DNA of 64,000 bases from Geosiphon pyriformis uo1. Lineage: Eukaryota > Fungi > Glomeromycota. The notes under the pieces are model-generated. The model searched no databases and had not been told where the DNA came from. It was given only the letters and a program-made list of their open reading frames with translations. The translations under genes were made by a program, and so were the position numbers. The DNA is taken from assembly GCA_016748015.1 (NCBI GenBank), contig JAAOMT010000109.1, positions 83,820 to 147,819 on the forward strand, in the 5' to 3' direction. Below, one piece after another: positions 31,539 to 62,180 of this stretch (its first letter is position 1; each line of letters begins with the position of its first letter).

Positions 31539-32971
31539 TTAATGGCCAAATCTATAGCCAAATCTATAGCCAAAATAAGGACCATCATATGTAAAATCTG
31601 GGTCATGTACAAGCTGTGAATTATTACAATACTATATAAATGGATTTTTTATAAATTTAATATTAATAAATTTTAAAAGATGCAAAAAAAAGTGCGAAAC
31701 TTACCGGATTTTCCTTCAACCCATTAACATTACTAGGACAAATATAAAACTCGAAAGTATTACAATCACATTTTCCCTCGATCCAGTATTCTATTCCATG
31801 ATGAACGTAAGAATCGAAATTTGGTTTCCCGGTACTAATTGGGAATCTTGGGATTTGATCATCCATCAAGGTTACTCGACTAACCGTTACCATTTTTTCG
31901 ACAAGGTTCGCAAATTCTATATTCCCTATCCTTGGAGATCCCCAAGAGACGACATGAATTTCATTAATCAGGTATAAATTTCTCATAATTAGTGCCGTAA
32001 ATATTGCATATACTGTATTTTTGAAATAAAATAAAATTTTTTTTTTTTTTTTTTTTGAACACATTGACCCCCAAAATCTCAATCTCAATCTTCCAAGAGA
32101 AAAATAAACATACCGCCTGCTAAGCGATGTCCAAGTATCAACAGATTTCTCCCATGCAAGTGTTTTTTGATGGTTGTTGTAAAATATTTTCTAATGTTTT
32201 CAGAAACTTTTAAAAATCCGTTGTAAAATATTTCATCAACTCTTGCATCCTTATAGCCAGGATAAGGTATCAGGTTATTTTCTCGGTTTTTATTCCATGT
32301 GCTCAAGTAGCGTATTTCAGGTGCTTTTATAACAAATACGACACTATTCGGCTTGAAATATAGTCTGCCTAAAAGTATTATTTGATTTTAATAATAATAA
32401 TAATAAAGTTCATAGAAACAGGACATTTATATAGCGAAATACCTATTACATTCCGATTTTTGTCAAATTCCATTACTTCATCTCTTGCATAATAAATCTC
32501 ATGAGTATACATCGCAAAATTTTGAAATTTCAACAGTAAAAATTTGTCCCTAATTCTTTTTGGTTTATTTAATGACTTTTCATCATGGGTACGTTTAATC
32601 AAAGGATTTCTTTCAATTCTTGCCTCAAATTGAGACGTTGGTAATTTATCTCTTCTTTTCTGAGTTGATTGTAATAAAATGTATTGGCATTTTTTTTTAC
32701 ACTTCCTATTACTTTGTCGAATTTCCTGTAAATTTTTTTCTCTTAAATCTTGCTCCGTTGAAGATAATTTGCTGATGGTAATGGGTGGAATTGTTTTTCT
32801 TTCTTTATTGGCATCAAAAGTTTTTTTAAAACTGAGGAAATTTAAATTCTCTAAAATATTCTCTGATCTATGGGAAAAATCTGCTTCAGATCTGATGAAA
32901 TTACTTGGATCAAACGCAACCATAACAACAACAATAAAAGCGCAGAAAAGAAAGATAAAGGAAGAAACCAT
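31539..32971 (-). CDS. Secreted class-3 lipase-like protein lacking catalytic residues, 4 exons
   Basis: Exons 32971-32443, 32368-32114, 32012-31705 and 31631-31539 join in frame. Signal peptide MVSSFIFLFCAFIVVVMVA. Motifs LGHRLAGG, SWGSPRIGNIEFA, RVTLMDDQIPRFP, HHGIEYWI, GPYFG. Confidence 0.85.
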
Positions 32972-34237
32972 CCTTGTTTGCCTTGGCTAATTTCCTAGGA
33001 TATATTTATATCCTTTTTCAATCAATATCATCTTTAATTAAAGAGTTTCCTCTTTTACAAATCTTTTTACCTTTTGTCTGTAAACATACATGTCATCATC
33101 CGGAGAACAACTTTATAATGAAAAGTTTCATATCATATAGTCCATGTGATTTTTCCAATATCAAAAAAGTTTCGGATTTTCTTGTTTACCATTTTTGATG
33201 ATACTGAAAAAAATTTTCCAAAAATTCAAATTTGTTTTCTCAAATCTTTCCCAAAGTTATCATTGTTAGCGATTAAATCAAAAAGTTTTATATCACTGAC
33301 TTTTTATCCAATCAAATATTAAATCGCAAAAATGATTAACACCCAAAATGACCTTCGAACATATATTTCTTGATATGACGAACAAATTTTAATTTTCGAG
33401 GTAAAAGTAAAAAAAAAGGATTTGAATTATATTCTTTGGAAGAATTTACGTTTTTGTAAATTTTTCTTCGTCCTAAATTGAAAATTGGTTGTAATGTAAG
33501 GAAGTTTGTCAAAAATATTTCAAAGTCCATGTAGCATACGAATATTATTATTTGTTGAACTTAACACACACCGAATTCTATTTTAGGCCTTTTGTAATGT
33601 TCTTCGGTAACATAGTCATCTAAAAGGAACCCTAGGGTTAAATGGCTCGTTTCTTGGTTTTAAAATTTCCTTTTTTTTTAAGTTAATTGAGGCCTTTAAT
33701 GCTTGAGATTTTTGATCAGAGTTAATGAAAAGTAACCAACTTTTTTTTGAATTCTCTTCACTAATAAAAACTATATTTTAGCAGCATTTATACAGATTTA
33801 TCCAATCAATAGATAGAAACCTCAAAAAATGCTGTGGTTCTTTGACATTGAAAATCTTCCTTTTTAAAATTTGTTTATCAAGTTTAATATGAGAACTGTT
33901 TTATTAAATTAAATAAAAGCAAGTGGAAATACAAAAGTAATTACAAGTTTGGTGAATAATATTGATATACAATTAAGATTCAAAATCTTTTTGTTGCGAA
34001 TAGAATAGTCTTGATAAATTTGACCTTTAGTGTTCATTATTAAAGTTTAGTTAAAGATTTCGAATTCGTTGTTAACTAATCTATATAATTTTCAAAATTT
34101 TTCCTGAGCCTGGTAGAGTATGCCTGTAAGCCAAAGATTCCGACCAAAAAGTTTTCTCAAACTTCGATTTGGTGATAAGTTCGTGCGAAGAGAATGACGG
34201 TGATGATCAAGAAAAGAGTATTATTGATACAACTTTT

Positions 34238-34369
34238 TTACATGATCGAACATTGACCGGTACCACTACCATCGTCTGGGTCACCAGTTGGTCCTTTAAT
34301 AGAGCCATTTCCAGGTGCGATGACTGAGAGAGGATTGAATGAGGATTGATTGTTGGTTGTTGGTTGCAT
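34238..34369 (-). CDS. Putative CAAX lipopeptide (a-factor-like pheromone) precursor, 43 aa
   Basis: MQPTTNNQSSFNPLSVIAPGNGSIKGPTGDPDDGSGTGQCSIM*. In-frame TGA two codons upstream of the ATG, A-rich start context, GC-richer than flanks, C-terminal CSIM. Confidence 0.7.
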   Translation of the reverse strand: MQPTTNNQSSFNPLSVIAPGNGSIKGPTGDPDDGSGTGQCSIM

Positions 34370-34472
34370 TTTTCTTCAAGTTATTTGATTTAATTTGAAT
34401 ATGATGGTTTTTTCTTTTCTTTTGGTCGTTTTGGTTGGATTGAATGAAAAGAAATTGGGAAGGCAAGACCAG

Positions 34473-34804
34473 CTTTATAGAAAAAAATCATAGTCTTCAT
34501 ATTATCATTCATCAATAGGAACAATATTAATTGAATTAGAATGTTAAAACCGAAAATTCTGACCAATCACCGTTTAGATTTATATTATTATTCAGCGGAC
34601 CCATTGTTAAGCTATCCCAACAATGTCCTAAACGGTCTAAATAATATTCAAAATTCAATTTATTAATTATCCGTGAAAAAGCCAGGAGACAGAGCATTGT
34701 TCTTTTCATCGAGTACATTCATGTTCAAATTCACCCATTAAGGAAATTTTTTTACGCAGATTAATTCTTGAAACGTGATACTACCACCTTTGTATCGAAC
34801 AATG
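34473..34804 (-). promoter_or_regulatory. Putative promoter of the CAAX peptide gene: TATA-like element plus a cluster of HMG-box-type AACAAT(G) sites
   Basis: TATAAAG (minus) at 34473-34479. AACAATG/CATTGTT at 34602-34608, 34619-34625, 34695-34701 and 34798-34804; AACAAT at 34520-34525. Confidence 0.5.
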
Positions 34805-34850: not shown

Positions 34851-36865
34851 TTAGTAGTTGATCCCCTTTTTGGATCTTTTTCGCCGAGTAAAACTCGTTG
34901 ATCGAATATATTCTACATTTTGATTTTTTGGTTTCCGCTTTCTTCTATCGAATATTTCTTTCTGGTATTGATTATCTTTGGAAAACATCTCTGCCTTGCG
35001 CACGATGTCATTCTGAACATTGAAAATATAGGAGTAAGCAATTATCTTTTAATAATAAGAAGGATGCTCATCCTTACCTTAAAAAAATAAAGAACTTCAT
35101 TTGAGTCAATTGGGATGGGAAATGAAAATCATCCCCTTGGAAGCCAAAATAGAGGCCATCATCAACCAAGTTAATCCCAATGAGGCGGCCACTCAAAGCT
35201 GTAAACTGGAATCCAAAGATCACGAGATTCTCAGCTACATTTACCAAAATGTTTTTCCTCAAGAATTCATTGAGGACGCATTGATTGGTGCGAAAGCATT
35301 TGCTGCGATCCCTCACAGCCTTACTGGGAGTGCTAGCCCGAGCGAACTCCGAATGGCTCAACTCGACGTCGTTGCTGCGGCACGTGATCCGCAAATCGAT
35401 TTTGCGGCCCGTCGATGTTGCTTTCGATATCGTTTTGCCCATAAAAAATTAAGTTAGTAAAATTAGGAAAATTTAAATTAAATCAATTCACCCTTACCAA
35501 TGGAGACAAATTTTTTCTGCAACATCAGCAAAAACAATATCCAGAATAGGTGCCAACATCTGTGATATAATCAATTTCTGTGAGTTTTTGCTTTTCACCC
35601 AATGCATCAACGAATAGAGTTGAATTTTTCAAAAACATATCCAAGCTAGTAATAAAAATCAAAATTCAGTTTAATAAATCAAATAACCAGTTAAAAAAAC
35701 ACAATAACATACATTATTAAGTATATTTTGATGATTTGTTGATACTTGAAGCTCCTTGTTTCATCCTTCATTTCATCTAAGATAAAGTTCTTTGCTTCCA
35801 AGTACTTATGGTTACCGCACATCTGAAGAAAAAAAATTAGTCGTGTTATAAATAATAATTTCTCCAAGATTAATAAACTATTTCCAAACCTCATCTATTT
35901 TTTTCACACTTTCATGGATAATGCCTTCGAATTTTAATGGTGTGATATTGAGCTGACCATATACTTTGGCCTTCAGATCATCCCACTCTTCACCAAAGAA
36001 TGTCCACATGCCATTATCAAATTCAGATGTTAAATCAACAATGCAGGATAAACCAAGCCTATAATTGAATTTGGTTATTTTCATGGGTTCAATCGATAAA
36101 AAATTATTATATGTATTATACCTAATAACACTCATCACAAATGCATCAGGTTTCTTGGCCTTTTTTTGTGATTCTCCTCCCAAACATTCCTTGCATTATT
36201 TGCAAGAACTTCTGTCACCGATTCGCCATTTTTTAACTTCCATTCTGAATCTTTCGAGGAAGAAGGAGCATCAAAGGGATTTGATAAAGAAACTTCATCA
36301 TCCCTGCTTTTTTTATCCTTATATTCGTCATCTTTATCATCCTCTTTGTCATCACTGCTGCTATCATCAGTTGAATCAACTCCCAACAACTTTTGATTAA
36401 AATTCCATGTGCAAAAAAATTAATGAATTGACTGTTCAGATTTAACATTAATAATATACATGTATATATCCATACCTTCTTTACAGATGAAGTTGGTGAT
36501 GGTGAAACTTGGTCAAAAGACTCTTCATCCCACTGGTTTCTCTGTATTATACAGAATAATTAACAAGTTAATTCTTATTCAAAATATAAACTACTATGTA
36601 ATTACCTCTTCTTTAACATAGATTTTATTCCAGAACTCTCTAACAGTGGCTGAATTAATATAAGTGTCAAATTCAGCGAGTAGGAGTTGGCTTTGGTTTT
36701 TTCGACGGTTTGTTCATTTTTTTCAAGAGCCACAGCTTTCAAGACTTCAGATAAAGCTTGCTCTGCCTGTTGCTTTTGAGAGTAAGAGAATTTGAACTTT
36801 TTAAAGAACTTAATAGCGTTAAAATCCTTTAATATAGTTTCTTTTGTCCATTTAGTGTAATCCAT
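34851..36865 (-). pseudogene. Multi-exon protein with C-terminal PD-(D/E)xK nuclease-like (Crinkler-type REase-like) domain, frameshifted
   Basis: GRKIDLRITCRSNDVELSHSEFAR...DRSKCFRTNQCVL...FGFQF motif with an acidic linker. Frameshifts near 36685 and 36180, plus a 22-nt deletion at ~35094 relative to the duplicate at 55870-55891. Confidence 0.6.
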
Positions 36866-37213: not shown

Positions 37214-38932
37214 TTACCAATTAGAATCTGCCCGATTTGCAATACCGACACGTCTTTGACCGTAATCGAAAATTAAATAAAAGTTCTATCGTCGTATATT
37301 TTGTATTAAAATAATTAATAAAATTTTGTTAACATCACTCTTGCAATCGAATTCAATTATTATTTAAATCACCTTTATAAAGATCCCACCAACAATCCAG
37401 ACGTCCTTCGGAGCCCCGGCTTGAATTCCCGAATAACAGTGCGTCTTGTCTACAGGCTCCAAAATCAAATCCTCAATTGGCACCACAAAATTACGACCTC
37501 CAAAAACAAAAGTAATCGCGTATTTCGACAAAGTTTTACACGGTATCACCCAGGATCCGTTCAGATCCTCGGTATTATATTTTAGCTTTGTGAATTTTGA
37601 ATTTGGTATGTTTTTATAGATTTGGTCCGCCGTTTGGTCATTTACGAGGATTATCGTGGTCCCGGTGTCAATTACCGCTTTTCCACCGATATTTATAGGG
37701 TTATGGCCGACATACATGTTTGTTGCGGGAATCGCCCATTCCCTTTGGCTGACTACTTGAACGTATGTTATTGTGCCTAATATTATTAAGAATTTTACAT
37801 TTAAATGTGAACTTTTTTTATCTAATATAAAATCAGATAAATTAAAAGAGAAAATCATTCTTGTTACCTTTCATTTTAGAATTATCAATTCCACCAAAAA
37901 GATATTCGCCACCACCACCTTTCTTCTTATGAATTAAGCGTACAGAAAAGACTGATATCTTAATCAATAGAAACAAAAAGAGAGATAAGATTCATTAAAC
38001 TCCTCTTAATCCAGAAAAGAAACCACAAAAAATAGATTTCATGAAAAGAAATTTCTCAACTTACCAAAATATTAGAAATTATATTATCAAGTAGGGTTTT
38101 GAACCCAGAAATTCGAGAATTCATGGGCAGACCTAATCCCATAACACCATCGATTACATCCCCTTGAAAATGATGTGTTTGATTGGTCGCTAATGCGAAA
38201 CTTTGTTTTGAGACCTGAATGCCATCGAGATATACTGTTTCTAAAATTGACAATTCAGAATAGTCAACTTACTTAGTTTTAAAATTAAAATTAGAAAAAG
38301 ATATTTTTGTTTTTACTCTGAATTTTAAAAAACTTTTTCCTCTTTAAGAGAAATTCGTCTTTACCCTGAGCAATAAATCCTGAAACATTAGAGCCATCTA
38401 AATACCCTGTATTCCATTTAAGGTTCGGTTCAATTTTTTTGAAAGTCGAAGACTTTTTCGGATCATATAATGTCTTTCCTTTACACGCTTGACAAAACAC
38501 AGAGGTAACCCAAAGATCCGAGGACCCAGTATCAAAATTTAGCGTGAAATTTCTTCGCGGGGTACCAAGTTGAATATCGCCTATCCATTCAGCATCATCA
38601 CCTACCGTACTGACTGGAAGACGACCAGAATGTGAAGTTAAATATAGGCACGGTATGGTGTCAAGATTAAAAGAATTTAAATGTAGATATTTTTTGTGAT
38701 ATCTCGTTACTAATTCTTTAGGATTATGTTTAATAACTGCTTTTTGATGAGCAAAAGGGGTATCGCGTTTGTATAGGGTATTATGACGAAGTGTGATCAA
38801 GATTGTACCATTTTTTGAAGAATTGGATGAATTTAACAACAATGGTATACCTTGGGTTAATGAAGCAGTAATAAAATTTATAGAAAAGAAAAAGATTGAT
38901 AAATTGAGGACGGAATTTTTATAGGGTAACAT
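37214..38932 (-). CDS. Secreted pepsin-family (A1) aspartic protease, rhizopuspepsin-like, 5 exons
   Basis: Signal peptide and propeptide, FDTGSSDLWV and IDTGTT catalytic motifs, flap YLDGS, terminal FDYGQRRVGIA. GT-AG introns join in frame. Confidence 0.92.
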
Positions 38933-40139: not shown

Positions 40140-41677
40140 TTATATCAAATAATTCTGTTTCATTGTTAAAATTATTGATGTCATGACGGATGCGGTTATC
40201 ACTAACACCAACCCTAAACCCATCTGATCTATCGAGTGTGCAGCTAATCCAGGATTTGGAGGTGGAATCGAAATATCTGGATCAGCAGTATTAGCAGTAT
40301 TAGCACCTCCCGGACCAGCACCACCATGATCATTTCCACCTAAATTAGGTGACCCAACTCCAAGCGTAGAATAAGAGCCGTTATTCGCTAAGGTAATATT
40401 TGGTGGTCCATAACCAGCAGGTGGCCATGTAGAAGTAGCATTTCCACCGTAATAACACGTGATATTTACCCAATCTACTGACATTGTATAAACACGATTT
40501 TTATCAGACCAATCAGTCGGTGTACCGGCCCAATCTGCAGTGCCTTTTAGGGTCATCCCACCATCCCAGACACTAAATTGAATTCTTTGTGGTCCACTGG
40601 GGTATAGAAAAGAACCATTACTTGCTTTCGTCGATTCCAGGGTGACGGTTCTTAATGGAGCACCATCAAGGAACCAAGTAATGTGATCTGGCAACCATTC
40701 GATTCCATATTCGTGATATTCTTTCGAAGTGTCTCCACCAGTTTTATGATGTGTTCCTTGAGTGTAATCTAATACTCCTTGCCAGTAATAATTTGATTGA
40801 ACTTCTGACGGTTCTAACCCCACCCATTCGAAATCTATTTCATCTCCTGCCGTATTTCGGGTCTGTGAGTTGATTCAATGATTAAATCAGTTATATAGAA
40901 TTAATTTTTAATCAAGAAAATTAAATTTGATATTTCACGATAATTTGAATTACTCACAATAAAGGAGGAAACGACACCAAGGTTCGAAGAGGCAGTTTTT
41001 ATTCGAGCTGTTACCCGTCCGTATTCCATCCATCGAGTAGTTGAGACGGTTGATCCGAAACCTTGATAATTACCAAGGGAATTCTTATTTACACTATCAT
41101 ATTTCATTGATACTAAAAGATTTCCACCACTGAAACTTGCGTAATCTGGCTCAAAATCCGATGTCCAATCGTACTGTTGAATGAAAGGTTAAGCATTATT
41201 TGCACACGCCTAAGAATTTGATTGGTTATAGATCAAAAGCGTAAATAAATAAATAAATTAATTAATTAGTCCTCAATACCTTGATAGGATCTCCATTAAA
41301 ATTCTTTATATTAACAATTTTTGGATTATCAAAATTCTCAACCATGTTCACGCAATACGGTTTCGGAAAACATGATTTTGGTGTGAACGAATTTTCAGGT
41401 TCACAACCAGTAGAACAGAATCTCGGGTCATTTGAACACCAGCCACTATTACAACATGGCGAATCTATCGGACAGTTTTTATTGGAGTCAAAGTTTTTAC
41501 AGGCTGATTCGGCTAGGAAAGTTAAGATCGAGAGAGTAAAAATTGCTGATACAAGAAAGGGCTAGAGGCGAAAAAGTGAATGAAGGAAAGTTTAATTTTT
41601 TGGGAATTTTAATAAAAATTCAAATTTCATCAAATTCTTTTTATATAATAACTTGCCTTTAAATAATGGAACTTCAT
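40140..41677 (-). CDS. GH16 Crh/Utr2-type chitin-glucan transglycosylase with Cys-rich chitin-binding module and probable GPI/TM tail
   Basis: Exons 41677-41657, 41561-41280, 41173-~40958 and 40863-40140. Signal peptide MKFHYLKPFLVSAIFTLSILTFLAESA, CPIDSPCC..GWC module, catalytic DEIDFEWVG, hydrophobic C-terminus. Confidence 0.9.
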
Positions 41678-46837: not shown

Positions 46838-48407
46838 TTAACTATTTTCGTTGTAAGGTTCCAAAAGAGCAATGGCCTTTCTAAGATTATCCATTGCTGT
46901 TTTCACATCACTATAATTCAGAGCACTAATGGCCCATTTGGAATGTTTTTGGGCAATGGCAATGGTACTAGCATCTATTTCTGGAATGTTTCGGTAATTA
47001 TGAGGTGTCTGGGGATTTGTGACATGAGTATGTGTTTGGAAAGAATGTACATTAGAGGATGGGGTTGGTTGTTGATAGGGTGGGGTGACATATTTATTAA
47101 AACCTAGTTGCGGCGGAGGAGCCGGAGAAATAGGACCATGTAGCTGCGGTCTTTGTTGTGAGGGTTGATGAACCGAGTCATTACTAAAAAATGAGGGTTG
47201 TTGAACATTTAATTGGTTTTGATCATAATATAAATTGTTGGATGAAGTAGACGGTAAATTTAGCGAGGAAGGTGTGCTTGTAGTTGAAGGAAATGGATCT
47301 AAACCAATAACAGTATTTGAAGGAAATCCGATTGGGGAATAAAACTCATTTGATTTGGGTGAAGGGATGGTGGGATGGAATGGTGTTACGATCAAAGTGC
47401 TCAATTGCGATTTGACATCTGGGTTATCACCAATAAAGGGATCGTAATGTGTCAAAGGTTGTTGATTTTGTGAGGGTGGTGAGGGAAATGATGCCCAAGG
47501 ATCTTCCTCGGTTTTATGTAAAGAAGATATAGATGATAGTGGGGCAGAAGGAAATTGATCAAATTCAGGAACATCATTTGAGTGAGTTCTGGAATCAATA
47601 TTAACCGAGTCAGTTTCTTGTTGAAGTTGGATATTTGGATCACCACCTGGTGGACCGGGAACTGGTGCTTCTCCATTATTTATCGCTTTGACGATATTTG
47701 CTGCCTTCCACTTGGCATATTTAATTTTCTCTTCGATCTGTAAATTTCCAAAAATAAACATTAGCCAGAAATCTAATTGGACTTTTTTGGCGAAACTTTA
47801 TTCACCTCTGGTTCCATATCTCCAAATATGTATAATAGTTCCAAAAATATTGAGGCTGCCAAAAAAGTTTTAGCTGTCTTTCTACAAGAAAAGCAGGTGA
47901 ATTAATTGATTAGTGACATTTCAAATTTGCATAAATTTTTATATATACTTTGACGCTTTCCCCAAACGATCCTCATTGTCAGCATTGAGGAATATTTTCA
48001 ACCCAAAATTTTCCACATATGCAGATCCTGCGATATCATTGGTGATAGCTTCATTATCTCCAAGATTTTTCTTTTCCTTTTCGTCATATTGGCAAATTAG
48101 CTTCGAATTTGAAGAAAATTACCAAGCTGACAGTTACACAATACCGCTTCGAGAACGTCCAAGAGAGTCGCAAGGAAAGCGGTGCTTTCCTTACTCTTTG
48201 TAGGTTTAGCAATCGCAAGTTTTGCAGCATAATAGTTGCCTAGAAGCTCAGGTGTTAGACAACTATCATTTTTGTTTGGTATCACAAAAAAAAATCAACC
48301 CTACAATAATAAGCAATGATAGGCTCCCGCTTGAGAAGTTCCTGGGCCCTTTGAAGATATGGGCTTATAAATTTCAATTCAACTGGAACTGGAGGTAAAG
48401 AGGCCAT
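46838..48407 (-). CDS. VTA1: Vta1 (ESCRT Vps4 cofactor)
   Basis: N-terminal MIT region (ELKFISPYLQRAQELLKREPIIAYYC, KIKYAKWKAANI), Pro/Ser linker, and C-terminal VSL (AQKHSKWAISALNYSDVKTAMDNLRKAIALL). Confidence 0.93.
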
Positions 48408-55032: not shown

Positions 55033-56912
55033 AAAAGTATATGGTCAGCTCAATATCATATCATTAAATTCGAAGGCATTATTCATGAAAGTGTGAAAAA
55101 AATAGATGAGGTTTGAAAATAGTTTATTAATCTTGGAAAACTTTTCATTATAAACGATTAATTTTTTTTCTTCAAATGTGGGGTAGTCACAAGTTTTTGG
55201 AAGCAAAGAACTTAATCTTAAATGAAATGAAGGATGAAACAAAGAGCTCTAAGTATCAAAAAGTCATTAAAATATACTTTATAATGTATTTTTTTAACTC
55301 TGTTTATTTGATTTATTAAACTGAATTATGATTTTTATTACTTGTTTTGATATGTTTTTAAAAAATTCAACTGTATTTGTTAATACATTGGGCGAAAAGC
55401 AAAAACTCACGGAAATAGAGTATATAACAAAGATGTTGGCACTTATTCTGGATATTGTTTTTGCTGATATTGAAGAAAAAATTTGCTTCTATTGGTAAGT
55501 ATGAATTGATTTTATTTAATTTTTTCTTAATTTTACTAAGTTAAATAATTTAAATTTATTTTTAGGAGCAAAATTGATTTGCAAGTCATGTATTACAGCA
55601 ACAATGTTAAGCCATTCGGAGTGCGTTCAGGTTAGCACTTTCAGTAAGGCTGTGAGGGATCGCAGCAATGTCTTTGCACTAATCAATGCATCCTCAATGA
55701 ATACTTGAAAAAAAGCATTTTGGTAAATAAAGCTGAAAATTTGATGATTTTTGGATTTTAGTTTACAGCTTTGAGTGGCTGTCTTATTGAGATTGACTTG
55801 GTTGATAATGGGCTCTATTTTGGCTTCCAAGGGGATAATTTTCATTTCTCATCCCAATTGACTCAAATGAAGTCATTGCAATATACACTTGAGGTTCTTT
55901 ATTTTTTTAAGATAAGAATGAGCATTTTTATTATTATTAAAAGATAATTGCTTACTCTATATTTTTAATGTTTAGGATGACATTGTGCACAAGGCAGAGA
56001 TGCTTTCCAAAGATAATTAATGCCAGAAAGAAATGTTTGATAGAAGAAAACAGAAACTAACAAATCAAAAAGTAGAATATATTCAATCAACGGATTTTAC
56101 TCTGCAAAAAAAATCCAAAAGAGATCAACTTCGAATAGATCTGGGAAATAATATAAATCTAAATAGTTATTGATCATTTTATTCTTATTGATAAATGCTG
56201 ATATAAAGGTTATGATTTTTTTCTAAAAAGCTGGTCTTGTCTTCCCAATTTCTTTTCATTCAAATCAATTCAATTCAACTAAAATGACCAAAAAAAACCC
56301 ATCATATTCAAATTAAATCAAATAACTTGAAAAAAATGCAACCAACAACCAACAATCAGTCATTGCATCTAGAAATAGCTCTATTAAAGAACTAACTGGT
56401 AGCTCAGATAATGGTAGTGGTACTGGTCAATGTTTGATTATGTAAAAATTTATAATTTTTTCTTGATCATCACCATCATTCTCTTCACACAAACTTATCA
56501 CCAAATCAAAATTTGAAAAAACTTTTCGGTCGGAATCTTTGACTTACACGCATAATCTACTAGGCTCAGAAACAATTTTGAGATTTAATATAAATTAGTT
56601 AACAACAAATTTGAAATCTTTACCTAAACTTCAATAATAAATACTAAAGATCAAATTTATCAAAACTATTCTATTTGTAACAAAAAGATTTTGAATCTTA
56701 ATTGTATATCAATATTATTTACCAAATCTGCAATTACTTTTGTATTTCTACTTGCTTTTATTTAATCTAATAAAACAGTTTTCATATTATACTTAATAAA
56801 CAAATATTAAAAGAAAGATTTTCAATGTCAAAGTACCACAGTATTTTTTAAGTTTTTATTTATTGATTGGATAAATCTGTATAAATGCTGCTAAAATATA
56901 CTTTTTATTAGT
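55033..56912 (+). repeat. Inverted duplicate of 33760-35967 (nuclease-like pseudogene 3' half, CAAX peptide gene and flank)
   Basis: Continuous reverse-complement alignment with many transitions and short deletions. Confidence 0.92.
56336..56445 (+). pseudogene. Frameshifted copy of the CAAX peptide gene
   Basis: Begins ATGCAACCAACAACCAACAAT (MQPTTNN). A 22-nt deletion shifts the frame; the original tail still reads GSGTGQCLIM*. Confidence 0.85.
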
Positions 56913-59900
56913 AATGTTTTTTACTATTAAATTATTTTATTGTATATTTAAATATTACAAAACTTTATTTTTTATTGACTGTAATTAAATTCATATTACT
57001 CAAGAGAAATACAATTGAAAATGTTTTCAAACTATTAATAACATTTTTGCTCTTTTTTAAATAAATTTTATTTTTGCAAAACAATTACCTCATAATATAT
57101 AAAAGCTGTTAAATATTCAAAAAATAAATACTTTTTCTATAAAATAATGTTATTATAACCATAGTAATTTCAATTAGATAAGATATTTATTCTTCCTAAA
57201 AATTTGTTGAAAAAAACTATTGTTAAAAAAGTATAATATGATATACAATATTATAGAAATTAAACATTAATGTTAACTTATGGTTATTTGAAACCCAAAA
57301 GTTACAGGTAAAAAAAACTGTATATAAATAAATGCTAATAGAAAAAACTATTTATTTTGAAGCTATAATATTTTTTGGTCTAATAATTTTTATTTTAAAT
57401 TATTTTTTTATGATTAATAATTTTATTAAGTTTTTTTTTAACTAGAATTTTTAAAACTAATTGATTTTTAAATGTCTCTAAAAATTATTTTTGTTTTTAC
57501 TTTTGGTTAAATTTAAGATTTTTTTGATCAAGACACAAAAATCTTATCAATATGACTTAAAATCAACAATAACTATGTATTTTAATTATATAGCTATATT
57601 TAAAACTTTCTTATAAAAATAAACAAATAAATTTTTTTATCTAAATGCTTGCTTTTTTGATGTTTTAGTTCCAAAAAATTCAATAATAAATCTTTTAAAT
57701 AAATTTTATAAAAATTAAAAACTAGAAAAAGTATATTTATCTATTTTAAATTGTCAAATATTTGCTTAATAATTTATTATATGATACATTTATTACAAAA
57801 TTATTATTGAAAATAATAAATAATTTTTATATAGTATTTCTAAAAACATTTATCTTAATAATTTAATATTTTATCTTTATATAATAATGCAGTAATTTTG
57901 TAAAAATGCTTTGTCTTAAAATTGTTTAAGTTTATTGTTTTAATAAATAAATTATAATAAAACTAAATAGTTTAATAAAAAAAATTTGTATTTAATATTT
58001 ATTTAAAACAAAAAATTAACTAAAAATAGCATTTATTTTCTTATTATCTTATTTTATTTAATTTTAAAAATTATTAAAACATTATCAATACTTAAAATAT
58101 ATTTTAATATATTATTTTTTAATATAAAAGTTTAAAAAATATTGCTTAATAAGATAATATAATCATTAAATTAATAAATCCAATTTAAAACATTTTATAA
58201 ATTATTTTAATTTTTATATAATTATATAATTTTACAATAAATTAATTTTTTTTAAAATATAACGATTAATAATTTACAATAAAACAATTTATTATACTAT
58301 TATAATTAGATGTAATATGCTAATAGATAGTAAAAAAAACAATATTATTTAATAAAAAAATAAAAAAATAATTCAATTTTAATAAGCAAATTAAATTAAT
58401 AAGAATTCAATATGTAAGATCAATTTATAAATATTTCAGTTGTTATTTTTTTCAAAATAACAAAAAATTTAAAAATAAAAAAATAATTTATATTGTCAAC
58501 AAGAAATAATATACTAATATAATTCTATATTTTATGTTAATGCTCTTAAAATTTAATATTAAATATTAGTTATATTTTTAGTAAATATTTATTTAATATA
58601 TTTTATAAAAACTATATAAATCGAGAAAAAAAATAGTGAAAAAAAATAAAAAAGTTAATATTATTGTATTTATTTTTACTTTAAATAAAATTAATTTAAA
58701 TATAAATTTAAGTATAAATAAATTTTTACAGCTTTAAAAAGTTTCATTTAATGATTGTATTAATAATTTAGTCAATAATTAAGCTAATAATTAAATTTAT
58801 AATTATATCTATAACTAGTTTTGAAAATAGTGTGTTTATTAATAATATTAATAACTAATATATATGATTAAATATGACTAAAAAGATTAAGCTCTAACAA
58901 AGTAAATTTATTTAAAAAAAGTTCTATTTTAAAGTTAACTAATTTGTTAAAAATTTTAGTTAATAAAATATAAAAAACTACAATAATATTAATTTTTAAT
59001 CCAAAAAACCAAACTTTTATATAAGTGTTTTGGCTTTTTTTGTAATAATTAAGACTTTTAGAACATTTAAACATATAATGCCTAAAATTTCTACTTGAAT
59101 TTTTGAAGTTGTTTTTTTATAAGCTTTATATTTTCAATAATTTTACCAAGTTTTTTATAACTTTTAAGTTGTTTTTATATGACAATTTTTTGTTTATAAA
59201 CAAATTTTTTTATTATTATTCTTTTAAGTATGTTAAAAAAAAAGTATTTTGACAGTTATGTACTTAAACATATATTTCTTTATTTTGTTGATAATTTTCT
59301 GTTTTTTCGTAACAGTTTTTTGAAAATTAATAATAAAGTATATTTTATTTTTATTTTTTATAATAATTTGTTTTTTAATAGTAAGCAAAGCATTTAAATA
59401 ATTTTTTATCTAATATTTATAGATAATAAAGAACATTTTAATCAAAAAATTATTTTTTTATATTGATTAAAGATATGTTTATTTTGGGACTAAAATGGTT
59501 TTTTTATATTTGTTTTGGTATTTTACTAATAGATATTATAACTATTACAATAATAATAACTAATCAGATTTTTGTGATATTTCTTAATTTATATATTATA
59601 AACAAGTTAATTATTAAATATTATTCGATATTTGTTTTGCAAAATATAAGATTTATTATTTAATATTTTGTTAATTATAAATAGTTTTTTCTTTTAATTT
59701 AAAATTTTATCATCAAAAATATTGTTTTATTTTAATTTATATTTAAAAAGTAAGTTACTAATACTTAAAAAAAGTGTTTTATATATATTTTTTAAGTTAT
59801 TTTTGAACTTTTTATAAGTAATTATTTGTGTTTTTACCAAAAAGTTTAATATTGTTTTAAATCTTTATTGCAAAATATTTTTATAGTTAAGTTTAATTAT

Positions 59901-61324
59901 TTCTTTAAAAAATTCTGTTTTAATATTAGTTTTAATGAATAATATTATCATATATTTATAGAATAAATAAAAAGGTTTATAATTAGTTAAGTTATAATTT
60001 ACTGTTTTATAAACAAAAAATGTTGAAAACAAAGCTTTATTTTATAGATTTTTTTTTACTAATGTTTACTAAAATTTTACAAAGATTTAATTAAAATATT
60101 CTATTAACCTATTAATCTATAAGTAATAAAAAAAAAGTTTATAATATACTTTAAGTTTTTTTACTATTGAGCTAAAAAAACTTTTTTTTATTTAAAAGTA
60201 GTTTTTAAATACATCTATGTTTATATATAATTTTCTTATAAATAAAATTAACAATTATAATAATAGTTTAATTTAAAATTACTTTTATTTAAAAATTTAA
60301 TTAAAATAAACTAAATTAAACTTTGAATACTGTTTATGTTTAATTCAAATTATGAACTAAATTTAATTTTTTTTAACAAATCTGAATTCAGTTCAAGTTT
60401 GGTTTAAAATTTTTAAATTTATTTAAATTCAATGGAATTAAAAAAAAAATTTTATATTACTTTTTCATCAATTTTTACTTTGTTTAATTATTATAATCAG
60501 TTAAAAAAGTATATAAAACTATGTATATATAATAATTTTGCTTTTTAAATTACTAAAATAAATTTATTTTTTGTATTACCTAATATTATTAAAGATTTAA
60601 AATCCAAAATAATAGAATTTAATAACCTAAATAGTCTAAATTTTAATATCTAATAAATATATTTTTTAAAATAAAATATAGGACTATTTTGATAAATTTA
60701 AATAGATAAAAAATTGCTAAATATATAATCTTAAATATGTATATAAATTTTTTTTTTGGTAAACTACAAACATTATCAAATTTTATAGTATTATTTTTTT
60801 TTATTGCTTAACAAGTGTAGCCCAAAAGCCACCTAGAACAATATATCAAACTAAGTGATCTAAATTAGACACTAATTATGCATTTTATATATATAAATAG
60901 TTACTTAGACCAATTAAGAACACATTACACTAAAGCTTTAGAAGAAAATTTATTCAAAAAAGACATTTTTTAAACAATTTCAAACAATGTAACACTATTA
61001 TTAATCAATTCAACTAGCTATTTTAAAGGCATTAGTTTTTACAACAGCAGATTTATGTTTTCAAAAAGACATCAAGTTAGAAAAAACTTTATTACTTAAA
61101 TCAACCAGGTGTTTAAATCACCAAATATATCAACATCTTCTATGCAGCACTCTTTTTTTTAAAGAAACTACCTCTCTTTTCAACTTATCAACAACTTTAT
61201 TAAAAGAACCTATAGTACCAAAATTTCATTGATTTTAAGGCCAAGTTTACTGCTTGAGACCAAATCTCTATTAATAAATTGTTCAAACAATTTAACCAAA
61301 GAATAGTATTATATAAAACTTAAA

Positions 61325-61559
61325 AATAATATGTCTGTTTTAGATATTAGATGTAAGTTTTTGAGAGATAGCTTTAATCTTAAAATAGCTCTTTATATAT
61401 CTTAATATTATATAAAATTTAAGAATGATATGTCTGTTTTAAATGTTAAATATGAGTTTTTTAAAAATAGCTGTAATCTTAAAATAGCTTTTAATATATT
61501 TTAATGTTATATAAAATCTGAGAATAATATGTTTACTTTAGATATTAGATATAAGTTTT
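61325..61559. repeat. Degenerate tandem repeat, 99-bp unit, about 2.4 copies
   Basis: Units start at 61325, 61424 and 61523 (aat(a/g)atatgt...). Confidence 0.8.
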
Positions 61560-61852
61560 AAGTACTAAATAAGATCTTATATTTGTAATTATATTTTTAC
61601 TTATAAAAAACATGATTAAAAACAATAAATAATTCTTAAATTGTCAAATAATTATAAGTTAATATATAAGATAAAAAAATTGTGTTTAATATAAATCATA
61701 TAATTAATATTATAATATTATTAAAATTGCTATTTAATAAAAAATTAATATTTAATATAAATATAATAGTCAATATATATTTTATTTCAAAAAAATCATA
61801 TAAAAAAAAATTTATAATTCTTTTTTAAACTGTTTTTTTAGTCTTTTTGGCT

Positions 61853-62180
61853 GAAAATTTGACTTAAAGCAATAAAAATCATTTAAACTAACATTAAAAA
61901 AACATAATTTTTGATAATATAAATATTATAATAACTCTAAGTTTTAGATAATAATAATACCGAAAATTTGGCTCTAAGACAATGATAAAAACCAACTTAA
62001 ATTTATATTAACAAAACATAAATTTTTAATAATATGAACAATATAAAAACTTTAAGTTTCAAATAATATTAATGGCAAAAATTTGGCTTTAAAATAATAA
62101 TAAAAACCAATATAAGCTAATATTAAAAAAACACAATTTTTAATAATATAAGTACTATAGTATTTTTAAATTTTAGATAA
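61853..62180. repeat. Degenerate tandem repeat, ~110-115-bp unit, about 3 copies
   Basis: Units start at ~61853, 61961 and 62076 (aaaatttg(g)ct...aaaaacca...tttttaataatat). Confidence 0.7.

Follow-up and report, generated by a model that had tools for sequence, protein, structure and literature searches.

The question raised by this locus is whether a 43-codon open reading frame (ORF) in Geosiphon pyriformis uo1 is a gene in its own right and, if so, whether its product is a lipopeptide signal of the a-factor type. Arbuscular mycorrhizal fungi and their relatives retain a Ste3 receptor, the pheromone MAPK pathway, meiosis genes, and a MAT-like locus, and we know of no sexual cycle and no pheromone in these organisms. 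Halary et al. (2013) found no peptide pheromone genes in these fungi despite the presence of STE3 and STE6 (PMC3834313). In the survey of Le Marquer et al. (2019), the only finds were Kex2 repeat proteins resembling the alpha type, and its authors describe the pheromones of early-diverging fungi as largely unknown (PMC6339444). Our search of the literature on Glomeromycota, Geosiphon, and arbuscular mycorrhiza, in which subscription journals are poorly covered, returned no other report of a CAAX, farnesyl, or pheromone-precursor gene.

The window considered here is the whole stretch of 64,000 nucleotides that was analyzed. An earlier note on this DNA had described a 43-amino acid ORF at 34238–34369 without giving its strand and had guessed at a genome from the Glomeromycotina. 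The ORF is present exactly there, and the guess was correct, as Geosiphon belongs to the Archaeosporales within the Glomeromycotina. Both the ORF listing and the reverse-strand sequence place the frame on the minus strand, running from its ATG at 34369 to 34238 and closed by TAA; translation of 34241–34369 on this strand gives 43 residues with a C-terminal CSIM, and plus-strand translation across the same interval meets many stops. The sequence context that had been described is found in full. An in-frame TGA at 34378–34376 lies three codons 5' of the ATG, AAAA directly abuts the start codon, the A/C-rich leader with its CT-rich stretch contains no upstream ATG, and the TATAAAG element sits 110 nt upstream. 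The precursor lacks a signal peptide and has a hydrophilic N-terminus, with products of 39–43 residues across the family described below. Coordinates are collected in Table 1.

Table 1. Features of the peptide gene and of a decayed paralogue, in positions of the window
Feature	Position	Strand	Basis
Precursor ORF, 43 codons + TAA	34238..34369	-	Met1 at 34369-34367; paralogue pN/pS; cDNA contigs
CAAX box Cys40-Ser-Ile-Met, stop codon immediately after	34241..34252	-	CSIM invariant in 33/33 Geosiphon copies
3'UTR, to limit of cDNA contig, 187 nt	34051..34237	-	Contig 34051-34300, colinear with genome
A-rich leader, TATA box to ATG	34370..34472	-	Kept among paralogues; outside run X1 contigs
TATA box TATAAAG, 110 nt 5' of ATG	34473..34479	-	CTATAAA(A/G) near-invariant, 32/33 copies
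Five HMG/Sox-type cores AACAAT/ATTGTT (34525-34520, 34608-34603, 34624-34619, 34701-34696, 34803-34798)	34520..34803	-	Family-wide enrichment
Decayed paralogue, 22-nt deletion and mutated TATA box	56336..56445	+	Frame broken

Evidence for transcription comes from one public run (X1, 2019) available as contigs only, from which strand, transcript ends, and expression level cannot be read; the biological condition is not known. The run was automatically guessed to be DNA but behaves as cDNA, in that three short intervals bounded by CT..AC, corresponding to GT..AG introns of minus-strand genes, are missing from its contigs. Within the 5 kb examined, coverage is restricted to 32000–32834, 34051–34370, and 36274–36631. 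A 250-nt contig (34051–34300) stays colinear with the genome across both the stop codon and the cryptic GTAA donor used by the public gene models, a 100-nt contig (34271–34370) matches the genome exactly, and no splice joint is seen in the X1 contigs over the ORF and the 187 nt of 3'UTR. A second 100-nt contig differs from the window copy at seven positions but agrees at every position with the paralogue at C729:960815, and thus at least two family members are transcribed. Because the X1 contigs fully explain the depth bins, the 5'UTR of the window copy must be regarded as uncovered. The frame that is open 5' of the ATG varies from 1 to 52 codons by copy, and 22 of the 33 intact Geosiphon copies lack any AG dinucleotide in the interval from the ATG back to the nearest in-frame stop, which leaves them without a splice acceptor that could extend the frame. 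An upstream ATG is absent from 30 of the 32 leaders that carry a TATA box. The earlier note had proposed a standalone gene and had held that lack of a transcript would count against it; cDNA-like contigs do cover 34051–34370, they show no joint to another exon, and the missing acceptors point the same way. The ORF is an unspliced, TATA-driven, transcribed gene, the 5' end of which remains unmapped.

The public models of family members all overrun the true stop codon, the G of the last codon and the TAA being read together as a GTAA donor, and give either products of 50–76 residues or chimeras of 182–792 residues. The window ORF itself is annotated as the first exon of KAG9304781.1 (355 residues), fused to a class-3 lipase gene at 31.6–33.0 kb. 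With the models spliced past the stop, the CAAX end is invisible in the public proteome. One could take these models at face value and regard the ORF as the first exon of longer genes such as KAG9304781.1: the junction of the reading frame with its TAA does yield a donor-like GTAA, and at least a dozen public models join there. We give this possibility almost no credence, however, as every model carries a different and unrelated tail, the cDNA contig 34051–34300 reads through the stop without a joint, coverage is zero from 32835 to 34050, the lipase ORF starts from a separate ATG at 32971 with a hydrophobic N-terminus, and the stop codon is conserved in 39 genes from three species.

The lipase gene (31663–32971, minus strand) lies downstream of the peptide gene and contains a 74-nt GT..AG intron (32368–32441) that is backed by a cDNA contig; in KAG9304781.1 the peptide ORF is substituted for the hydrophobic N-terminus that its own ATG opens. 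At 36274–36631, cDNA contigs delimit two short introns (36390–36475 and 36542–36605, CT..AC on the plus strand) in a minus-strand gene with an acidic, Ser/Asp-rich product. The remaining neighbors are ordinary: an aspartyl protease (37364–38932, minus strand, with two exons' worth of Asp domain), a GH16 glycosidase (40140–40823, minus strand), and a Vta1 homologue (46838–47761, minus strand). No mating-related gene was found among the genes neighboring the window copy. A very AT-rich tract (56000–62000, GC content 0.12–0.19) starts just past the decayed paralogue.

A six-frame search of the assembly from which the window derives (128 Mb, 792 contigs) found 37 places occupied by family members. 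Intact 43-codon ORFs with shared start and stop are present at 33 of these, and at least four further copies are relics. Eleven copies are gathered at the end of contig C729 in two sub-arrays with a spacing of 2–4 kb; other arrays lie on C578 (five copies), C551 (five and a pseudogene), C622 (three), and C657 (two), and the remaining copies, that of the window included, are single and occur on eight further contigs. The 33 intact ORFs comprise 29 distinct DNA sequences that encode only eight peptides, and the CSIM ending is unchanged in all of them. Variable sites fall at codon positions 1, 2, and 3 in the numbers 9, 11, and 33, the mean pairwise pS is 0.38 compared with a pN of 0.017 (0.008 without the two most divergent copies), and pN/pS is 0.02–0.04. 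The five other reading frames are broken or unconstrained across the 33 copies. The relic at 56336–56445 has accumulated six replacement and three silent changes past its frame break, which is a picture of neutral-type decay. By these substitution patterns, the duplicates are old, and each has been under purifying selection since duplication. Such a high copy number suggests selection for dosage.

Purifying selection on each duplicate excludes both a chance ORF and a decaying transposon. The notion that the ORF is a chance frame carried by a repeat or transposon draws on its multicopy, clustered distribution, often near contig ends, but differences between copies are nearly all synonymous, unlike those of decaying transposon copies, and we consider the idea effectively ruled out, being refuted by pN/pS. 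The ORF is also the sole part conserved between genera, and no transposon ORFs occur in the spacers examined. In the one array piece inspected (the dense arrays were covered only by 10-kb halves and 3-kb loci), the spacers held no other genes and no ORFs for modifying enzymes or transposons.

Some family members depart from the common pattern. Two divergent intact paralogues, L033 (C704:513199-513327, minus strand) and L032 (C551:57705-57833, plus strand), show 79% and 84% identity, respectively, and the C-terminal part of L033 (GPTSDPADGNGNGQC) resembles the Ambispora type more than that of most Geosiphon copies; L033 and L032 may derive from an older lineage or carry a second specificity. 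The frameshifted pseudogene L034 (C551:38222-41344) forms the C-terminal end of a 426-residue public Kelch-like model (P0015).

Homologues outside Geosiphon were sought by an exhaustive profile search of 1.84 billion representatives and by a word-indexed search with wider alignment. The relatives that these protein searches found all come from two species, Ambispora leptoticha, with four genes in a 10-kb stretch, and Ambispora gerdemannii, with two; unannotated micro-ORFs in other genomes of the Glomeromycotina and in those of the Mortierellomycotina and Mucoromycotina lay outside the searches, and absence beyond the Archaeosporales is not shown. Ambispora belongs, like Geosiphon, to the Archaeosporales, in another family, and its public models are also mis-spliced. 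The six Ambispora genes have 39–43 codons and end in CVIM (four genes), CIIW (one), and CVIV (one). Between the genera, the ORFs align without gaps at identities of 0.67–0.79, the flanks fall to the shuffled baseline, and the ORF is the sole conserved segment. Fifteen residues are invariant over 12 aligned distinct peptides from the three species, among them N-terminal residues, FN, GPT, Q-C, and the Ile at CAAX position 3, and the N-terminal half is conserved as strongly as the C-terminal half. The earlier note would have abandoned its proposal had the CAAX box not been conserved in homologues; a Cys at position -4 followed by the stop is kept in 39 of 39 intact genes in three species (33 with CSIM, four with CVIM, and one each with CIIW and CVIV). 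Other searches added nothing: an exact look-up of the window peptide in public assemblies gave no match, a Pfam scan of 12 family members matched no family, pheromone families included, and an ESM Atlas feature search gave no usable match. Two proteins considered as homologues, P0013 and P0019, are low-complexity repeat proteins and were rejected as false positives, as was the only match from a metagenome scan, a bacterial methyltransferase that shares just GPTGDPDDG. Taken together, we are nearly certain that this is a real, selected family of CAAX-peptide genes.

The interspecies comparison also bears on a different kind of product. The family could encode precursors of another ribosomal natural product, for instance one cut at Pro and cyclized like the MSDIN family, with CSIM as a mere follower; multicopy precursors of about 40 residues with several invariant prolines (P3, P13, P19, P27, and P31) would not look out of place there, and tandem arrays are frequent in such families. 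A hypervariable core is absent, however, the whole peptide being conserved, and the last three residues vary (SIM, VIM, IIW, VIV) around a fixed Cys at -4 and a fixed stop, which is the signature of a CAAX box and not that of a fixed follower. Genes for modifying enzymes are likewise absent from the array spacers examined, and we consider this origin highly improbable.

Conservation among the Geosiphon paralogues peaks from about -110 to +180 and is lost within a few hundred bases. An almost invariant element, (T/C)ATTGTTTC, precedes CTATAAA(A/G) by 40–75 nt in all Geosiphon copies except one, and in the Ambispora genes the TATA box lies at -114 to -138. The promoters of the two genera are otherwise unalignable but share a further feature, clusters of the core AACAAT/ATTGTT, counted from -450 to -100 and expressed per 350 nt. 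Geosiphon promoters contain 3.9 cores and Ambispora promoters 3.3, compared with 0.58 and 0.61 in shuffled promoters and 0.33 and 0.17 downstream, respectively; the far-upstream value in Geosiphon is 0.85, and the locus background in Ambispora is about 0.7. The excess is 5–7-fold in both genera, and in Geosiphon the cores prefer positions near -150, -230, -280, and -320. Paralogous promoters are not independent samples, but the recurrence across genera is independent. AACAAT is the core bound by HMG boxes of the Sox/MATA type, and the HMG factors Prf1, Ste11, and Mat2 act directly on pheromone genes in Dikarya. The promoter clusters provide circumstantial backing for a pheromone function but do not prove it. 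One intact copy, L030 (C657:385580-388708; gene at C657:387080-387208, minus strand), has lost the shared promoter, has no TATA box, and retains homology only over the last ~50 nt before the ATG; it may be a silent copy.

The earlier note had called for a check on homologues of STE3, STE14, STE24, and RAM1, and all of these have counterparts in the genome. There is one STE3 gene with intact exons (C642:334886-335808), together with two loci matching ICMT, a Ste24, three beta and two alpha prenyltransferase loci, two M16 peptidase loci, and about ten ABC_membrane loci for ABC-B/C transporters, among which Ste6 orthology is unresolved. The CAAX-processing enzymes found are, STE3 aside, universal in eukaryotes, and so their presence shows only that nothing required is missing. 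A Rce1-like protease was not detected in the genome, nor was a match to STE2, a negative that our control genomes were unable to validate. Ste24 has dual roles in yeast and can perform the AAX cleavage itself (PMC2148179), and a STE6 orthologue has been reported from Rhizophagus (PMC3834313). None of the 37 family places is on the STE3 contig C642; as the assembly is fragmented, distant linkage is not excluded.

A Met in the X position of the CAAX box directs farnesyltransferase, and by analogy the product is likely to be farnesylated. The scheme that we propose, modeled on the biogenesis of yeast a-factor, would begin with farnesylation of Cys40. Ste24 would then cut off the last three residues, ICMT/Ste14 would methyl-esterify the new C-terminus, and Ste24 and an M16 protease would trim the N-terminal part. 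The resulting lipopeptide would leave the cell through an ABC-B transporter, bypassing the secretory pathway, and could be sensed by the single Ste3-type G protein–coupled receptor, which would signal through the G-protein/MAPK pathway to HMG-box factors. Binding of these factors to the AACAAT clusters of the peptide promoters would close a feedback loop comparable with those of Prf1, Ste11, and Mat2 in Dikarya. We consider it probable, with considerable room for doubt, that the ORF encodes a precursor from which a lipopeptide signal of the a-factor type is made and that Ste3 reads this signal. Prenylation, export, and receptor activation are all inferred, and neither biochemical nor genetic evidence exists for them.

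The strongest competitor is a prenylated micro-protein or lipopeptide that works independently of Ste3; it might be a membrane-anchored intracellular peptide, a component of the wall or cell surface, an antimicrobial peptide, or a signal aimed at a photobiont, plant, or bacteria. Conservation of the CAAX box and selection show only that the Cys-terminal box is important and leave the recipient of the product unidentified. A peptide that is hydrophilic, acidic, and conserved over its whole length is compatible with such a role, as are transcription in an ordinary transcriptome and the lack of linkage to STE3. On the other hand, the family is common to Geosiphon, which has a cyanobacterial symbiont, and to Ambispora, whose members are plant symbionts, so that a partner-specific signal is unlikely. 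HMG cores are present in the promoters, as in the pheromone genes of Dikarya. As far as is known, moreover, the only conserved, domain-less fungal CAAX proteins of less than 50 residues are pheromone precursors, and it is this, together with the existence of an orphan Ste3, that leads us to favor recognition by Ste3. We regard a product acting elsewhere as unlikely, yet far from negligible.

If the lipopeptide is indeed read by Ste3, its biology need not be that of classical mating. With its one peptide type and one receptor, the genome displays no mating-type dimorphism. Several features fit poorly with a classical two-mating-type system: 33 near-invariant copies stand beside a single receptor, to whose gene they show no linkage, the predicted mature part is hydrophilic and acidic, and conservation is as strong in the N-terminal half as in the C-terminal half, although an extension that is cut off and lost is not usually so constrained. 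These misfits suggest a dosage-driven signal for self- or species-recognition. Self- or conspecific recognition, as in hyphal fusion or in mating without pheromone dimorphism, would account for one invariant peptide and one receptor no less well than two mating types would.

A separate issue is whether the resemblance to ascomycete pheromones reflects descent. Precursors of the a-factor type have less than 100 residues, no signal peptide, and an S/T-rich N-terminus, with the CAAX/CPAX box as their sole strict feature (PMC10569646); CSIM is among the accepted endings in a list from Leotiomycetes (PMC10569646). The Geosiphon peptide satisfies this description in size, absence of a signal peptide, CAAX box, and S/T-rich N-terminus. 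The likeness to yeast Mfa1 pointed out in the earlier note (an MQP start and an IKG..DP stretch) proved to be real and collinear and to exceed shuffled controls, but the Saccharomycetaceae were picked for comparison post hoc, after the motifs had been seen. With mature yeast a-factor, the peptide shares IKG-x3-DP, 5 of 12 residues being identical, a result matched by 0.4% of shuffles. With the precursor of S. castellii, it is collinear from MQPTT to DP with one small gap (Smith–Waterman score of 38, 0 of 5000 shuffles), and the score of the Ambispora peptide against the same precursor is matched in 6 of 5000 shuffles. The K. lactis precursor gives little signal and no significant similarity beyond MQPT, and Sordariomycete a-factors give none beyond the CAAX box. 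On the basis of these alignments, we treat the Saccharomycetaceae likeness as an unexplained resemblance and do not record it as homology. It is conceivable that the arbuscular-mycorrhizal lineage has its peptide pheromone in this family and that the family shares true homology with ascomycete a-factor, with MQPTT...IKG-x3-DP...CAAX shared by descent and a farnesyl-peptide/Ste3 system older than the split between Mucoromycota and Dikarya; we hold this to be doubtful. Were it true, the peptide would signal in an autocrine or conspecific manner and control hyphal fusion and the exchange of nuclei in a group for which no sexual cycle has been observed.

Regardless of its origin, the family provides a specific candidate ligand for the orphan Ste3 of arbuscular-mycorrhizal-type fungi. 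It can be synthesized, which makes the receptor question testable by a yeast reporter and mass spectrometry. If the function is confirmed, this would be, to our knowledge, the first CAAX lipopeptide pheromone outside Dikarya. Because they splice past the stop codon, the public annotations of the Geosiphon and Ambispora genomes systematically hide such genes.

The family can be set beside several known CAAX systems. Its endings CSIM and CVIM are identical to the CAAX boxes of prelamin A and K-Ras4B, respectively, both well-known targets of farnesyltransferase, and the Ste24 orthologue makes a further, upstream cut in prelamin A; these are large intracellular proteins, whereas the whole product in Geosiphon and Ambispora has only 39–43 residues. 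Ascomycete a-factors (those of S. cerevisiae, Mfa1 and Mfa2, of other Saccharomycetaceae, and of Sordariomycetes and Leotiomycetes) are alike in their short precursors without a signal peptide, in an S/T/N/Q-rich N-terminus starting from MQP-T-T, and in a C-terminal CAAX box with X = Met, and they too are multicopy in some species and accompanied by Ste3 and enzymes of the Ste24/Ste14 type. The Geosiphon peptide differs from them in eight extra hydrophilic residues between DP and the Cys and in a predicted C-terminal part that is long, acidic, and hydrophilic (GDPDDGSGTGQ-Cys), whereas that of ascomycete a-factors is hydrophobic. Its copy number of 33 is far above theirs, and no Ste2/alpha-factor arm was detected. 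The pheromone/receptor systems of basidiomycetes (Ustilago Mfa1/2, Cryptococcus MFa/MFalpha, mushroom Phb) differ in other respects, in that the Geosiphon genes are unlinked to the receptor gene and encode one dominant peptide, without allelic or paralogous diversity of specificity and without sequence similarity to the basidiomycete precursors. Those systems are nonetheless alike in having Ste3-type receptors only and CAAX precursors of about 35–60 residues. An HMG-box factor (Prf1, Mat2) acts on clustered sites in their pheromone promoters, and their precursors are often present in several copies, with mature parts that are hydrophilic and rich in Gly, Asp, Asn, and Ser, comparable with the part predicted for Geosiphon.
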